The notes: a model not told the origin generated them from the letters alone. A stretch of DNA of 62,000 nucleotides from Octopus vulgaris (GCA_951406725.2 OX597815.1:189802001-189864000); one strand, 5' to 3'; counted from the stretch's first letter, positions 10,151 through 57,013 are shown. Numbers and translations: made by a program.

Positions 10151-10312
10151 TCATCAACATAATATCAGTTTCACTGATTACCATGTAATGCATTTACTTA
10201 TATAAAATATGCAATACATTTATTTATATAAAATAAAGATGGAATCATTAACATTACAAATAATTAAAATTTTAATTCATCCTTTAATTACAGAACAAAA
10301 TATTATTTAATA

Positions 10313-10553
10313 TTACGGAGATGTACTCGCATAGCAAGTGATTTGATCTGAGATCGTGTGCTGGAAAGAAAACAATTGCAGCGTGGAAGGTGTTTGTAAG
10401 CCATTTAAGAAACACACAAAAGCCGTCAGTGAACAGGTCACGGATTTTAGCGACGAAAATATTTTGACAAATTAAACTTAAATGTTGAAGTGAATCGAAC
10501 GGTTTTTGTGTGTTTCTAAAATGGCTTACAAACACCCTTCCACGCTGCAATTG
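10313..10553 (+). mobile_element. Fold-back hammerhead retroposon (family F1) with 12-bp TSD
   Basis: Inverted arms 10372-10426 / 10499-10554; one-sided ~58-bp extension on the left; TSD tattatttaata at 10301-10312 and 10554-10565; a deleted copy lies at 56131-56236. Confidence 0.8.
10425..10468 (+). ncRNA. Minimal type-I hammerhead ribozyme, G3-C8 variant core
   Basis: gtca-GTGAACA-G-GTCAC-ggatttta-GCGAC-GAA-AATATT-T-tgac: stem I 4 bp, stem II 4 of 5 pairs (mismatch fits CpG decay), palindromic stem III, UUU site. Confidence 0.65.
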
Positions 10554-11254
10554 TATTATTTAATAATATTCCACAATATCATTTAATCATATCAAGTGTT
10601 GGGCCTCACGAAGGCAATGGCCAAGACCTTTGGCATTATGTCAGGCTTGAGAAGAAGACCCTTCAAGCCGAGCAAAATTGCAGACGTGGCAGATATTGGT
10701 GTCATGCAAATGGCACCCATGCTGGTGGCATGTAAAAGCACCAATTACACTCTCAGAGTAGCTGGCATTAGGAAGGGCACCCGGCCATAGAAAACCATGC
10801 CAAATCAGACTGGGGTCTGGCACAGCCTTCCAGCTTACCAGTCCCAGTGAAACCGTCCAACCCATGCCAGCATGGACAATGGATATTAAATGATGGCGGA
10901 CATGATGATGATGATGATGATGATATCCGGCCCAAATATAATACCTGTTTTATGTACAGACTGACCATATAGTGGTGGCAGTAGTTGCGGCAGTGGTGGT
11001 GGTGGTGATGGTGGTGGCAGTGGCAGCGGTGGTGGTGGTGGTGGTGGCTGTTGTTGTTGTTAAGCAACAAGACGGGTAAGGGTGATTAGGTGATGGTCTA
11101 GGGCTTAGGGGCGGGAGACCCCAGACTTTGGAAAAAAAAAACTTTGGTTGTCTTGTTGTAGTCAAGGGCTCTTTGTTGACATCTGACACCACTGGGAGGT
11201 GGCCCTTGAAGTCGCTGGAAATGGAGATCTCCAGGTCCAAATTCTTGAATGGCT

Positions 11255-11720
11255 GGTGATGATGGTGGTAGTGGTGGTGATGATGGTGGCGGTAGTGGCA
11301 GTGGAGATGGTGGTGGTGGTAGTGTTGGTGGTGATGGTGGTAGTGATGGTGGTAGTGATGGTGGTAGTGGTGGTGGTGACAGTGGTGGTGGTAGTGGTGG
11401 TGATAGTGGTGGTGGTGGTGTAGTGGTGGTGGTGGTGATGGTAGTGGTGGTGATGATGGTGGCGGTAGTGGCAGTGGGGATGGTGGTGGTGGTAGTGGTG
11501 GTAGTGGTGGTGGTAATGGTGGTAATGGTGGTAGTTATGGTAGTGGTGGTGGTGACAGTGGTGGTGGTAGTGGTGATGATGGTGGTAGTGGTGGTGATGG
11601 TGGTGACAGTGGTGGTGGTGGTGATGGTAGTGATGGTGGTGGTGGTGGTCGTTGTCATCATTGCTGTCATTGTTGTCGGCGTCATCATCGTAGTAGTAGT
11701 AGTAGTAGTAGTAGTAAGCA
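11255..11720. repeat. Compound (GGT/GAT/GTA)n array with a ~180-bp higher-order duplication
   Basis: Block gatgatggtggcggtagtggcagtgg(a/g)gatgg occurs twice (~11280 and ~11455). Confidence 0.9.
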
Positions 11721-13304
11721 GCAGTAGTTGTTGATGATGCTGCAGTAAAGGACTGATTCATGGTAAGGTCAAAAGAAGCAGAGGTTATTTCAGAAGTAAG
11801 CACAACATGCAAATCTTACCATTTTGACAACATGGATTCTTGGTTTTAATAATCCGAGTGTTTTTTATGCCCACTGTAATATCTCCAGTGAAACGATTGC
11901 GTGGAAGTAACAAAACAGCAATAACACTGAAAACAGCAATGATACAGTTGTACCGAAACCTATTATTTTACTTTCAGGATATGTAAAAACGATACAAATA
12001 ACCAGAGTCACGGTTTACATAATTGCCAACAGTATTCTAAAAATAAAACCGCCTCAAGTTCGCACACATATCTGTTGAATTATTATTATTATTATTATTA
12101 TTATTTATTATTATTATCATTATTATCATTATTATTATTATTATTATTATTATTATTATTATTATTTTATAATTGAGCCATTAAATTTCGCTTCTTTTCT
12201 AGTATTCTGATAGAATTCCATCATTTGTCTCAGATATTTTTTTGATAGCTTGTTTGAGTTTTACTATTATTATTATTATTATTATTATTATTATTATTAT
12301 TGTTATTATTATTATTATTATCTCTTTTTATTTTTTCTCATTTTATTATTATTTTTTTTTTTTTTTTTTTTACAAAGTACCATATTCACAAGCAAGCAGT
12401 ACTGATACATGCAAGAAAATAAATTAAATGCCACTTTCAGGAATTATTTGAAGTAAAACTATACTTTGCAGTATTAGACTTAAATTTGCATATTGTGTAA
12501 ATGACATTCTCTGATGCCAAAGCTTTTAACTGTTTACGGATTCATGGTTCAAATTATTCATGCATGAGTTACTTTATCTGAAATTTAGGAACAAAGTGAA
12601 GACTGTTAATTTATTTGTTTGCTTCTTAAAACTTAAACAAATTCAGTGTCCAATTATAGAAAATTGACAAGTTTTATTGACAAATAGATTACTTTCTGAA
12701 ATTTTTGCAGTTGTTGTTGTTGTTGTTGTTGCTGATGTTGTTGTTGTTGTTGTTGTTGTTGTTGTTGTTGCTATTGTTGTTGTTGTTTTCATGCCAAACT
12801 ATAAAAACAATATGATTTCTGAAAGTCTATTGAAACATTCATTAACACCTGTTGTAATTTGAATTTATTTATCCTGAGATATGTCATGCATAAAGCAATG
12901 AGAATTTATTCATAAGATACAACAACCAGGTTGGAAAGATTTATTACTTGAAATGATGCAGAAGGCAGTAGATTATAATGAAAATTAGGTTTCGGCGCTG
13001 GCTTAATTTAGTAAGTAATTCACAATGTCACTGTCTGGCGTTGCAGCGATACACTATATAAATATTCATCATCTCATTAATGGTCTATTTATAAGCATGG
13101 ATAAAGTTAACATTTACCGAATTACAACAATGTAAAGGGCTAGTACATATCTCCATTTTCCATTGCAATAGGCAGATAAGAGACAAAATTCCCATAAGAT
13201 AACATGTTTCTGAGAATTTCTTCCATGGGAGGAGCTGAGCTAACAACTGCTGTCATTATTACAAGCAATAAGCTATACCATGTTGCAGTAGCTGTTGAAA
13301 ATAT

Positions 13305-13526
13305 ATGAATTCTGTAGACGAGGTGAGAACAGTACTGGAGGCGTATTTTTTGGCAAGGAGAAGTGAATTTTGGAAGAGGGGCCTTGCAAGTCTACCTGGA
13401 AGATGGAAGAGCATTGTAGAAAATGATGGAGAGTATATCTTAGATTAAAAAAGAACTTTGTTTATCTTAAGTCTGAAAAATGAAAGAAGTATAAAACATA
13501 CCGCATTATTCATGGGTTAACTCAAT
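13305..13526 (+). pseudogene. 3' fragment of a mariner transposase plus 3' end
   Basis: 13305-13448 reads MNSVDEVRTVLEAYFLARRSEFWKRGLASLPGRWKSIVENDGEYILD*, a typical mariner C-terminus; ends in a TIR-like ...ctcaaTA. Confidence 0.8.
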
Positions 13527-13570
13527 ATATATATATGTATATATATATATATATATATATATATATATAC

Positions 13571-55467: not shown

Positions 55468-56130
55468 TAACATGTCATTTCTGTTCGGTTTACTTACTGA
55501 CTTTAAGCAGTAACAAACAATGGTAGATTGTTAACAGTTTATGCCGTTCTCTCTCTCTTAAAATTTATAAATTATTCACTTTTGTTTTTGAAGTGGAATA
55601 AATTTTGCACATTTAGACATTTAAGAATTGTTAAAGTAATTGTTTTTACAGCTGAATGGTTTTTTGTACTCTAATGGTTATATAATGGTTTATCAGAAGT
55701 GTCAGGAAAACTGGTTTTAGTAATAATATTTAAAGTAAAGAACCTGTACCAAGCAGTCTTAACTAGGTGACCCATAGAAAATATCTCAGGGACATGTTCT
55801 GCATGCAAATAGGAATAGCATTTGTATTTGTGTACCATTTCTCCGTTTTTTACTGTCCTTCTTTTGTATACATTTGCTGCTTTCTTCCAAGGAATCTAGT
55901 GCTCTTAGTTTAGATTTTCCTTGGGGCTGGCCAGATTGAAGCAGTCTTGAGTATAACCAGTCAAAACTGCAAAGATGATCTGGAACTCGACTGAGGAAAG
56001 AAAACTCCGAATGACCCATCCTTGTTTTCTCTTGTCCCTTTTTGTATCATCTGTCTGGATGGTTTGTCGTCGCCTGTTGTATTCTTGTCCCACTTTTTGT
56101 ATTCTTATATATATATATATATATATATAT

Positions 56131-56236
56131 TACGGAGATGTACTTGCATAGCAAGTGACCTGATCTGAGATCGTGTGCTGGAACGGTTTTTGTGTGTTTC
56201 TTAAATGGCTTATAAACACCTTCCACGCTGCAATTG
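56131..56236 (+). mobile_element. Deleted copy of fold-back F1
   Basis: Matches 10314-10366 joined to 10500-10554 at a GAA microhomology. Confidence 0.9.
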
Positions 56237-56364
56237 TTTATATATATATATATGTGCGTGTGTATGTGTGTGTGTGTGTGTATACAGGGTAAGAGTTATT
56301 AAAACAATAACTTTTACCAGGGGTCAGCATACGTAATAAAAGTCAGAAAAAATAAATATTTCTA

Positions 56365-56670
56365 TATAACAGTGTATAAAAAATTTACACACACAGAGAA
56401 GGCCACCATGTGGACTTCTAACATGCTGAAAAGAGCAGTCAAAACCCAGACTACGAAAACAAAGATTCTTCTTTAAGGCATGTTGCTTTTAAGTGAGCAG
56501 GATATCTAAATGAATAAAAGTCTCAGTTAAGCCTATACCCATTGAGTTTCTGCATTAATGATCAAATAATCTTTCTTTTCAGGGTTTGAGTTTTGACTGC
56601 CTTTTTCATCATGTAAGAAGTCCACATAGTGGCCTTCTCTCCGTGTATAAATTTTTCATACACTATTATA
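56365..56670. repeat. Fold-back with ~90-bp arms and ~130-bp spacer
   Basis: agagaaggccaccatgtggacttct..gcagtcaaaac / gttttgactgc..agaagtccacatagtggccttctct. Confidence 0.85.
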
Positions 56671-56681
56671 AATATATATAT

Positions 56682-57013
56682 TTCGTTTTGGTTTGCAAGA
56701 TTCTTTATATGAGTTCGTGTGTTGAAGCATATTCTGTTGTGTCTGGGGAGAGTCACTTTCTTTTTGTGCCTTATTATTCAACACACTCACCGGTAAAATT
56801 TCCACATATTCCTTATTTTTATTTTCTAAAATTTTCGTTGCATGTTGCAACCTTTTCAATAGTTTTGAGAGTCAAAACTATTGAAAAGGTTGCAAAACGC
56901 AACAAAAAATAATTTTAGAAAATAAAAATTAAGAAATAAGTGGAAATTTTACCAGTGAGTGTGTTAAATAATAAGGCACAAAAAGAAAGTGACTCTCCCC
57001 AGACACAACAGTA
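56682..57013. mobile_element. Most complete fold-back F3: ~140-bp arms, short loop, one-sided tail
   Basis: Centre caatagttttga-gag-tcaaaactattg; arms extend to tattctgttgtgtctgggg / ccccagacacaacagtata. Confidence 0.9.
56826..56862 (-). ncRNA. Minimal hammerhead motif, U3-A8 variant (best copy)
   Basis: cta-TTGAAAA-G-GTTGC-aacat-GCAAC-GAA-AATT-T-tag. Confidence 0.6.

Follow-up and report, generated by a model that had tools for sequence, protein, structure and literature searches.

Penelope-like elements (PLEs) leave a recognisable signature upon insertion, comprising a 5'-truncated copy in inverted orientation, a tail of 30-40 bp on one end, a bias towards (TA)n and target site duplications (TSDs) of variable length (PMC8557442). 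In vitro, the PLE of the anole cuts and extends both target strands, using two internal start sites that bracket the tail, and its hammerhead lies ~90 nt upstream of these reverse-transcription start sites (PMC11167929). PLE hammerheads are described as having an extra nucleotide between A9 and 10.1, a G10.1-C11.1 pair and a palindromic 15.2-16.2 helix, and both a U3-A8 variant and dual motifs on opposite strands have already been reported for them (Cervera and de la Pena 2014, PMC4209133). A G3-C8 core is known as a partially active engineered rescue mutant (PMC11167929); in the literature we found this mutant only and no natural hammerhead family with G3-C8. In Octopus vulgaris, PLEs have been annotated as an order, 31 families of which were recently active (PMC13282606).

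We analysed 62,000 nucleotides of O. vulgaris DNA (the window), in which an initial annotation had described three unrelated families, F1, F2 and F3, with a common fold-back of tail and body. All three are real repeat families and their coordinates hold (Table 1). Together with a fourth family, HH46, which was absent from that annotation, they can on the basis of their sequences be read as short ORF-less octopus retroposons that were probably copied by PLE machinery. The earlier reading as ORF-less retroposons with a PLE insertion signature is upheld by asymmetric ends, solo and 5'-truncated units, variable junctions, AT-rich or (TA)n targets, TSDs of 10-12 bp, and hammerhead-like motifs showing the hallmarks of PLE minimal hammerheads (Cervera and de la Pena 2014). 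Since F1-F3 carry known PLE insertion marks, and F1 and F3 variant hammerhead motifs as well, they are new representatives of a known kind and do not form a class of their own. The proposal of a new system therefore has to be given up: one-sided tails, inverted 5'-truncated partners, microsatellite targets, the U3-A8 core, opposite-strand motif pairs and non-autonomous PLE derivatives are all already published.

Table 1. Positions of the F1, F2, F3 and HH46 copies and of their parts in the window.
Feature	Position	Strand	Description
F1a, whole	10313-10553		fold-back, coordinates borne out
F1a left TSD	10301-10312		TATTATTTAATA, exact 12-bp repeat of 10554-10565
F1a right TSD	10554-10565		second copy of TATTATTTAATA
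F1a inverted copy	10313-10425	minus	body 10425-10373, linker TTTTCT 10372-10367, 54-nt 3' tail 10366-10313
F1a centre			74 nt, between inverted arm 10373-10425 and body 10500-10553
F1a direct copy, no tail	10426-10553	plus	hammerhead-like motif at 5' end, 31-nt spacer, body 10500-10553
F1 hammerhead-like motif	10425-10468	plus	descriptor match, G3-C8
F1b	56129-56236		inside (TA)n; tail joined straight to body
F1b tail	56129-56183	minus	55 nt
F1b body	56184-56236	plus	53 nt
F2a fold-back	13570-13764		in (TA)n; tail 13570-13639 (70 nt), inverted arm 13640-13700 (61 nt), centre 13701-13705 (5 nt), direct arm 13706-13764 (59 nt)
F2b solo unit	52903-53009	plus	in (TA)n; single body arm with internal deletions, tail at 3' end
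F3A fold-back	26953-27165		inverted arm 26953-27030 minus its outer part and tail; direct arm 27031-27165; no spacer
F3A motif	26997-27030	minus	descriptor match, U3-A8
F3A motif	27031-27063	plus	descriptor match, U3-A8
F3 solo 5'-truncated copy	27480-27576	plus	final 47 nt of body, then tail
F3B with TSDs	44945-45252		tail 44957-45017, inverted arm internally truncated, direct copy ending at 45240
F3B TSDs	44945-44956 and 45241-45252		ATATTAACATAT, 12 bp
F3B motif	45112-45145	plus	U3-A8
F3C fold-back	56682-57011		in (TA)n; tail 56682-56734; inverted arm ends at ~56870, spacer GAG, direct arm ends at 57011
F3C motif, intact	56827-56860	minus
F3C motif, mutated	56880-56917	plus	GAAA to AAAA
HH46 solo unit	46269-46442	minus	C3-G8 minimal hammerhead at 46392-46347, 3' tail 46312-46269 (44 nt)

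One architecture recurs across the families. An inverted 5'-truncated copy adjoins a direct copy in F1a, F2a and F3A-C, as well as in a head-to-head pair of the HH46 family from O. sinensis (locus L128), which has an extension of ~50 nt on one arm only. All intact fold-backs carry a tail of 52-72 nt on the inverted arm and have a tail-less direct arm, with exactly one tailed end in four out of four. The tails are part of the elements, because they are common to independent copies with different flanks (F1a/F1b; F2a/F2b; F3B/F3C/27480-27576). The tails of F1a and F1b are 92% identical. F2b was recognised with F2a as the query, the initial 96 nt of which (13560-13655, covering the tail and the beginning of the arm) align to 53020-52924 at 91% identity. 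The solo F3 copy is 93% identical to F3B and F3C over their tail and outer arm. F1b, F2b and the solo F3 copy all terminate at the same tail end as the fold-backs. These three and a 150-nt F1 copy in the O. vulgaris locus L129, none of them part of the initial annotation, imply that the unit is a short linear element, consisting of a body and an optional 3' tail. We saw neither pseudo-LTRs nor a partial tandem arrangement, nor any tandem F1-F3 copy; F3A and 27480-27576 share one orientation and are separated by 315 bp, but this intervening sequence is unique. The sample is small: the window holds nine copies, to which other octopus loci add a single F1 copy, a diverged one resembling F3 and three from the fourth family.

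To locate hammerhead-like motifs, both strands of the window were scanned with a descriptor in which any base was allowed at positions 3 and 8. Matches were confined to the F1a centre (G3-C8), four F3 arms (U3-A8) and HH46 (46347-46392, minus strand, C3-G8). As initially described, the 3-8 pair is C-G, G-C or U-A. All matches have a G10.1-C11.1 pair, a single additional nucleotide following A9 and a helix III that is palindromic (15.2-16.2). The other core positions are intact in F1 and F3, G3/C8 and U3/A8 being Watson-Crick swaps. Dinucleotide shuffles predict 0.03-0.05 matches per window, a value that overstates the significance for F1a and F3 because the descriptor was drafted after the initial parse of the sequence. 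Across ~200 kb of other loci there was one likely chance match (L127), the rest lying in the F1 copy, in tandem repeats or in an F5 fold-back. By these counts, the hammerhead-like motifs exceed chance. The Rfam hammerhead models found none of them, either at the gathering threshold or when relaxed to E <= 10; since even the HH46 motif with its canonical core escapes these models, the test is insensitive to minimal hammerheads.

The motifs differ in detail and placement. In F1a, helix I (GUCA/UGAC) is followed by the core G3-UGAA-C8-A plus an extra G, helix II (GUC..GAC), GAA, the palindrome AAUAUU and U17, and the predicted minimum free energy structure is a hammerhead fold. The centre and body of F1a are matched at L129 12322-12449 with 88% identity, and the motif there is again G3-C8, with a helix I of 7 bp, which the truncated F1a copy could not reveal, and a helix II of 5 bp. 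Differences between these two copies concentrate at N7 and loop II (Fisher P = 0.001; two copies), and helix II has A.C in one of them and G.U in the other. In F3, helix I measures only 2-3 bp and no covariation was seen among the arms. The HH46 family shows a compensatory change from U-A to C-G in helix II across taxa, seen in tandem 129-nt relatives from another assembly (L124). The hammerhead-like centre put forward initially is retained for F1a. In F3 the motif is not one central element and instead lies on both arms, beside the junction; F1b has neither an inverted body nor a motif, and F2 still has none by the descriptor.

No YxDD or GIY..YIG context occurs in any frame of the window, and hence no Penelope RT/GIY-YIG ORF, in agreement with the initial annotation. 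There was likewise no RT-like ORF in 188 kb of octopus loci, and DNA and pseudo-protein searches, whose scope did not extend to an octopus repeat library or a whole genome, gave no autonomous PLE with a matching 3' end. Such absence is expected of a non-autonomous or truncated copy and thus counts against an autonomous PLE, not against PLE-mediated insertion. The copies could also be ordinary 5'-truncated insertions of full-length autonomous PLEs, each retaining the 3' pseudo-LTR and hammerhead segment together with an inverted partner and tail, and not dedicated families. The mechanism would then be identical and the source RNA alone would differ. Single or opposite-strand minimal hammerheads have indeed been called 'probably related to truncated PLEs' (Cervera and de la Pena 2014, PMC4209133). 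From the predicted cleavage site to the tail-less 3' end we measured 89 nt in F1 and 97 nt in F3 (~90-97 nt overall; ~39 nt in HH46), and the first two values are near the hammerhead-to-start distance of the anole PLE (PMC11167929). Moreover, an ATG-initiated frame is open from the body to the tail end in two of the three F1 body versions. We nevertheless consider truncation of autonomous PLEs unlikely, as the 5' ends are clustered and not scattered: five of seven F3 arms begin within ~17 nt upstream of the motif, the diverged F3-like copy in L129 begins at the same ATTGAAAAGG, and three HH46-family copies share one 5' end. In addition, no copy runs into coding sequence across ~250 kb, and the F3 body is filled with stop codons.

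The insertion sites are also informative. TSDs measure 12 bp in F1a, 12 bp in F3B and 10 bp in the L129 copy of F1; those of F1a and F3B are AT-rich and exact. The AT-rich 12-bp TSDs described initially are therefore confirmed for these two copies, but the length is not fixed. Random intervals had a flanking repeat of at least 11 bp ~1% of the time, mainly in microsatellites. The placement of other copies in (TA)n is borne out for F1b, F2a, F2b and F3C, i.e. four out of nine copies, whereas (TA)n makes up 2.9% of the window (P = 8e-5).

The fold-back had been thought to insert as a unit. Solo units, differing centres and variants common to both arms of one copy argue that it was formed at insertion, and judging by these features it looks like a by-product of insertion and not the transposing form. 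The inner junctions vary between F3A, F3B and F3C, and the tail-less 3' ends of F3 spread over ~12 nt of an AC-rich stretch. Ten sites have a minority base in exactly two F3 arms, and five of these pair the arms of the same copy, with 1.4 expected (P = 0.008); by overall identity, the arms of one copy are not always nearest relatives. These observations bear on fold-back DNA transposons (MITEs), in which a transposase would recognise the long inverted repeats and generate a fixed 12-bp TSD. Long inverted repeats and two TSDs of exactly 12 bp would suit such elements, as would the other fold-backs in the window (e.g. 19873-20244 and 57065-57456), for which no common one-sided tail can be demonstrated. 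However, the outer termini of F1-F3 are not mutual inverted repeats, because a tail of 53-70 nt is on one side only. One-armed, tail-only and body-only copies are present, the centres vary from copy to copy, the 3' ends of tail-less arms are not uniform, and the L129 copy of F1 has no inverted arm and yet a TSD. TSDs of cut-and-paste transposons are usually shorter than 12 bp. We accordingly rejected a symmetric MITE and regard this origin as very improbable. Slightly less probable still are SINEs moved by a LINE (RTE, CR1 or Dong-R4) and inverted through twin priming: the window does hold LINE remnants (an RTE C-terminus at ~42.4-42.7 kb and a LINE C-terminus at 32122-32391) and LINE-driven insertions also make variable TSDs near this length, but the 3' end has neither poly(A) nor a short repeat, tRNA-like heads and B boxes were searched for and not found, the tails have no match elsewhere in the window, LINE remnants included, two alternative 3' ends ~52-72 nt apart are no LINE trait, and twin priming joins different RNA segments and not two arms that both stem from the 3' region.

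For the reading that we prefer, copying of short retroposons by PLE machinery, we propose a mechanism by analogy with what the anole PLE does in vitro (PMC11167929). The transposing unit would be a linear RNA of ~110-215 nt, starting in F1, F3 and HH46 (not in F2) with a minimal hammerhead-type motif, followed by the body and by two alternative 3' ends 44-72 nt apart, the stretch between them being the tail. At an AT-rich or (TA)n target, a GIY-YIG endonuclease would cut the two strands at positions staggered by 10-12 bp. Both 3' ends could then prime reverse transcription inside the RNA, the distal site giving rise to the tail and the proximal site to the tail-less arm, and both cDNAs would extend towards the RNA 5' end and be joined head to head. 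This would yield a fold-back that is flanked as a whole by a TSD, has a copy-specific junction and bears a tail at just one of its outer ends. Short or aborted cDNAs would account for copies that are solo or truncated. As products, the fold-backs are probably dead, since their two motifs lie on opposite strands, so that they cannot dimerise within one transcript, and a transcript through a fold-back would be a long hairpin. If the hammerhead motifs act at all, they would do so in tandem or source copies, as dimers or with the help of proteins.

When comparing these families with known systems, the closest likeness is to the insertions of PLEs (Penelope/Poseidon, Neptune, Naiad and related clades), with which they share the inverted 5'-truncated partner, the tail confined to one end, TSDs that vary in length, a preference for AT-rich or (TA)n targets and, close to where the copied segment starts, a minimal hammerhead (PMC8557442, PMC11167929, PMC4209133). 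Whereas published tails measure 30-40 nt, those described here are mostly 52-72 nt (44 nt in HH46), and the units, of ~110-215 nt, lack an RT/GIY-YIG ORF and, within the window, also pseudo-LTRs and tandem arrangements. At the level of the motif, the minimal hammerheads of PLEs, including the U3-A8 variant found in Cercyon of Schistosoma mansoni (PMC4209133), have the same extra nucleotide at A9/10.1, G10.1-C11.1 pair and palindromic 15.2-16.2 helix, a short helix I, the U3-A8 core found in F3, and opposite-strand pairs 100-700 bp apart. The octopus motifs, which are putative ribozymes, differ in the swapped G3-C8 of F1 and in the 2-3-bp helix I of F3.

Animal non-LTR retrozymes and the Schistosoma hammerhead SINEs of the Sm-alpha type are likewise small, ORF-less, AT-rich and hammerhead-bearing, and are thought to depend on PLEs (PMC7229834; preprint 10.64898/2026.07.22.740005); the tandem 129-nt relatives of the fourth family add to this likeness. 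However, retrozymes are arranged as tandem repeats of 170-400 nt, carry canonical type I hammerheads and give rise to circular RNAs, whereas F1-F3 are dispersed as solo units or fold-backs with variant cores, and we rejected retrozyme arrays as their identity. Chlamys elements that are non-autonomous, for example MRC1 of Chlamydomonas, are also ORF-less derivatives inserting in a PLE-like manner, and their 3' ends are in common with autonomous PLEs; they differ in having no hammerheads and in building pseudo-LTRs and multicopies joined head to tail (Craig et al. 2021).

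The layout of tail, arm and centre that the initial annotation proposed for the three ORF-less families F1, F2 and F3 is real, and the tail, a 3' extension, lies on exactly one end in all four intact fold-backs. Three extra window copies were detected by self-comparison of the window and direct reading. F1b, F2b, the F3 fragment and the copies in L129, an O. vulgaris locus (OX597830.1) fetched for comparison, show the basic unit to be short and linear, made of a body and an optional 3' extension, and the fold-back to be one of several insertion outcomes. Besides an F1 copy, L129 holds a diverged F3-like solo copy that starts with the same ATTGAAAAGG as the F3A junction. 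Treating the fold-back as the element itself was therefore wrong, given the one-armed and solo copies and the differing centres.

Copies of the four families in the window and of F1 in locus L129
Copy	Position	Strand	Layout
F1a	10313-10553		tail 54 nt, linker 6 nt, inverted arm 53 nt, centre 74 nt, direct arm 54 nt
F1b	56129-56236		F1 tail joined straight to direct arm; no inverted arm, no centre
F1 copy in L129	12301-12450 (150 nt, L129 numbering)		centre and direct arm; no tail, no inverted arm
F2a	13570-13764		tail 70 nt, arm 61 nt, centre 5 nt, arm 59 nt
F2b	52903-53009	plus	single arm, then tail
F3A	26953-27165		outer part of inverted arm lost
F3 fragment	27480-27576		final 47 nt of body, then tail
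F3B	44957-45240		tail 61 nt, then long arms
F3C	56682-57011		tail 53 nt, then long arms
Fourth family	46269-46442	minus	solo copy with a PLE-type minimal hammerhead

The evidence points to a fold-back that is made at insertion and not inherited. The F3 copies differ at their centres: in F3A the arms meet directly, F3C has a spacer of 3 nt located nine bases further out, and the asymmetric F3B has an inverted arm that ends ~60 nt short. Minority bases shared by exactly two arms occur at 10 alignment sites, and 5 of the 10 pair the arms of a single copy (1.4 expected, P = 0.008). When arms are clustered by overall identity, the two arms of one copy are not cleanly paired; pairing within copies is thus seen in the shared-variant count only, and the support that it lends to formation at insertion is moderate. 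The tail-less 3' ends of F3 spread over ~12 nt inside CCCCAGACACAACAG, and the tail ends are sharp.

Exact 12-bp target-site duplications (TSDs) flank F1a (TATTATTTAATA) and F3B (ATATTAACATAT). When intervals of the same length were placed at random, a flanking repeat of at least 11 bp appeared ~1% of the time, almost always in microsatellites. The 12-bp length put forward in the initial annotation holds for these two copies but is not fixed, as the L129 F1 copy has a 10-bp TSD (CATATTTAAA), giving a range of 10-12 bp. F1b, F2a, F2b and F3C are embedded in (TA)n, which makes up 2.9% of the window and yet harbours four of nine copies (P = 8e-5).

Some copies lie close together. F3A and the F3 3' fragment (26953-27576) are in the same orientation, 315 bp apart, and have ~60 nt of body sequence in common on both sides of a unique segment; they may stem from two insertions side by side or from a partial tandem that was rearranged. 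Within 900 bp, the stretch 56129-57011 contains F1b, an older fold-back (56348-56689, arms 71-84% alike) and F3C, with (TA)n tracts between them, a cluster that fits the reported tendency of Penelope-like elements (PLEs) to land near earlier copies.

Hammerhead-like motifs were sought with a minimal descriptor (N3-UGA-N-N8-A, an optional extra base, helix II, GAA, a palindromic helix III, H17 and helix I) in which any base may stand at positions 3 and 8. Searching both strands of the window gave matches only in the F1a centre (G3-C8), in four arms of F3 (U3-A8) and, on the minus strand, at 46347-46392 (canonical C3-G8). In all these matches positions 3 and 8 form a Watson-Crick pair, A9 is followed by exactly one extra base and G10.1 pairs with C11.1; the descriptor demanded none of this. 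Block-wise dinucleotide shuffles gave 0.03-0.05 chance matches per window, a figure that inflates significance for F1a and F3, because the form of the descriptor was taken from the initial parse of these families, and that is a fair test for 46347-46392 and for other loci. Hammerhead-like motifs with one extra base stand for F1 and F3, the fourth family supplying the C-G case beside G-C and U-A, but F2 carries no hammerhead-like or other known ribozyme motif on either strand. Rfam returned no ribozyme family in the whole window at the gathering threshold, and at E <= 10 no ribozyme in four sub-regions, only generic miRNA-hairpin models; this silence is uninformative for minimal hammerheads, since the motif with a canonical core was also missed.

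Across ~200 kb of other loci the descriptor gave five matches: the L129 F1 copy, two 129-nt tandem units in L124, the centre of a further fold-back family in L129 (F5), and one in L127 that is likely a chance match. The L129 F1 copy keeps every core position, differing from F1a at N7 and in loop II, with a helix II A.C becoming G.U. Of the 35 constrained positions 2 differ between the two F1 motifs, and of the 11 free positions 6 (Fisher P = 0.001). Helix I of the L129 copy is 7 bp long (UUUGUCA/UGACAAA); it is invisible in F1a because the direct copy there is truncated within helix I. For the L129 segment, minimum free energy folding yields precisely the hammerhead secondary structure. F3 has a helix I of 2-3 bp, its arm-to-arm differences look like decay, and its copies offer no comparable support.

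At least two octopus copies preserve the whole F1 motif with G3-C8, in which helix I has 7 bp, helix II has 5 bp and helix III is a palindrome. Judged from sequence, it is possible, though doubtful, that F1 is a natural hammerhead in which the catalytic C3-G8 has been swapped to G3-C8, a candidate ribozyme. Should it cleave, whether dimeric or assisted by a protein, nature would offer a counterpart of the engineered C3G/G8C rescue mutant; together with C-G in the fourth family and U-A in F3, this would mean free covariation of the 3-8 pair among Penelope-type hammerheads in one genome. The core-swapped motif is a cheap way to test how far natural variation in the hammerhead active site is tolerated.

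The fourth family was absent from the initial annotation. Its motif comprises CUGAUGA followed by an extra A, a 6-bp helix II, GAA, an ACGU palindrome, U17 and a 5-bp helix I. A search with an ORF that chances to cross the element retrieved 82 short proteins, and Pfam found nothing meaningful in the relatives of this ORF. The DNA behind these proteins includes the tandem 129-nt repeats of L124, a locus from an ENA assembly, in which helix II reads GGCCGG/UCGGCC versus GGCUGG/UCAGCC, a compensatory change from U-A to C-G. An FWLK-like stretch upstream in L123, another comparison locus, raised the reading of a decayed LINE reverse transcriptase fragment; it was set aside because the hammerhead, not the peptide, is conserved, with the compensatory change in L124. 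In O. sinensis (L128) a head-to-head pair of copies (roughly 22513-22698 and 22956-23084) has a common 5' start base, one copy being ~50 nt longer at its 3' end. This pair shows that a textbook minimal-hammerhead family has the same one-sided tail as F1-F3. Between the two copies, a small element (22741-22876) with 10-bp terminal inverted repeats (CAGGTCACTG..CAGTGACCTG) and a tRNA-like interior sits in an (ATT)n tract. A (CCA)n/(AAT)n microsatellite adjoins the window element on its 5' side.

In the F5 fold-back (L129 9340-9720), arms of ~150-190 nt flank a canonical CUGAUGA..GAAAC..AUGCAU..GUC motif; the inverted arm starts at the predicted cleavage site, which makes helix I continuous with the long arms. 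L129 23333-23476 and L127 8667-8810 are diverged relatives, and the window has no F5 copy.

The window has an AT content of 65% and is dense in microsatellites and SINE copies. The SINEs are 85-91% identical to an Octopus bimaculoides chromosome locus, one window element is 91-95% identical to O. sinensis, and F1 is 88% identical to the O. vulgaris locus, which together mark the window as octopus DNA. Remnants of a mariner transposase, the C-terminus of an RTE-type LINE and another LINE C-terminus occur at 22738-23034, 43035-43909, 42400-42707 and 32122-32391; homologues of the mariner remnant, recorded as HTH_48 family, include proteins annotated in three Octopus species. Either side of the F1a region run two long G/T-rich triplet minisatellites (GGT/GTT-type; 9630-10200 and 10960-11800) with a GC skew of up to 0.39. 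Four other fold-backs (19873-20244, 57065-57456, 59872-60008 and 53876-54119), in which a TSD and a common one-sided tail were not found, may be DNA-type MITEs or old tail-less fold-backs. A nearly perfect fold-back at 31599-31754 (arms 98% complementary) adjoins (AT)n. It was considered as a fifth tailed family (31545-31754) and dropped: the left 55 nt resemble the SINE at 28943-29112, so this 'tail' is probably flanking DNA and the fold-back not a clear member of the tailed class.

We consider it probable, from a small sample, that PLE machinery copies F1-F3 and the fourth family as short units without an ORF, and that the fold-back arises from two-strand priming. Both target strands would prime cDNA synthesis, one at the distal start site and the other at the proximal one. 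The main rival, that the copies are truncated ends of autonomous PLEs, invokes the same mechanism; the clustered 5' ends of the copies argue against it, and it seems unlikely. Neither a reverse transcriptase nor a GIY-YIG ORF, nor an autonomous partner, was found in the window or the fetched loci. A metagenome scan with an F3 16-mer, too short a pattern, yielded only chance matches, none aligning past the seed; longer F3 and F1 patterns had no match in viral contigs, and protein-space searches with pseudo-ORFs across F3 and F1 gave no homologues. DNA fold-back MITEs and LINE-driven SINEs are both a very poor fit, as the ends are asymmetric, some copies one-armed and the centres variable between copies, with no poly(A) end, pol III boxes or tail matching a LINE remnant. 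Octopus repeat annotations still leave hundreds of SINE, MITE and unknown families unclassified, and the signature of tail and fold-back would shift some of these to the Penelope system.

Copying by PLE machinery agrees with what is known of these elements. The initial account of the insertion marks and their source was largely right; its claim of novelty was overrated, as every piece is already described in the literature. PLE insertions are strongly 5'-truncated, often with an inverted truncated copy on the 5' side. Just one end bears a tail, of 30-40 bp; (TA)n and other microsatellites are preferred targets, and TSD length varies (PMC8557442). In the minimal hammerheads of PLEs one base between A9 and 10.1 is left unpaired, the G10.1-C11.1 pair is conserved and 15.2-16.2 is palindromic; the U3-A8 variant has ~1,300 matches in Schistosoma mansoni, and opposite-strand motif pairs 100-700 bp apart were noted, single motifs being taken as truncated PLEs (PMC4209133). 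Non-autonomous PLE derivatives are described in Chlamydomonas (Craig et al. 2021), animal retrozymes have been argued to be PLE derivatives (preprint 10.64898/2026.07.22.740005), and the O. vulgaris annotation includes PLEs as an order, 31 families of which were recently active (PMC13282606).

In work with a purified anole PLE, both strands of the DNA were cut and extended, and reverse transcription started from two internal sites in an AC-rich stem-loop, the tail being the sequence between them (PMC11167929). Between the predicted cleavage site and the tail-less end lie 89 nt in F1 and 97 nt in F3, near the geometry reported for the anole element. The tails of these families are longer than published PLE tails. 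None of these results overturns current understanding. The copies are a compact natural record of PLE integration: ~300 bp show both priming events, the two sites at which reverse transcription began (one giving a tail, the other none), the junction and the TSD, in agreement with an in vitro reconstitution achieved only in 2024.
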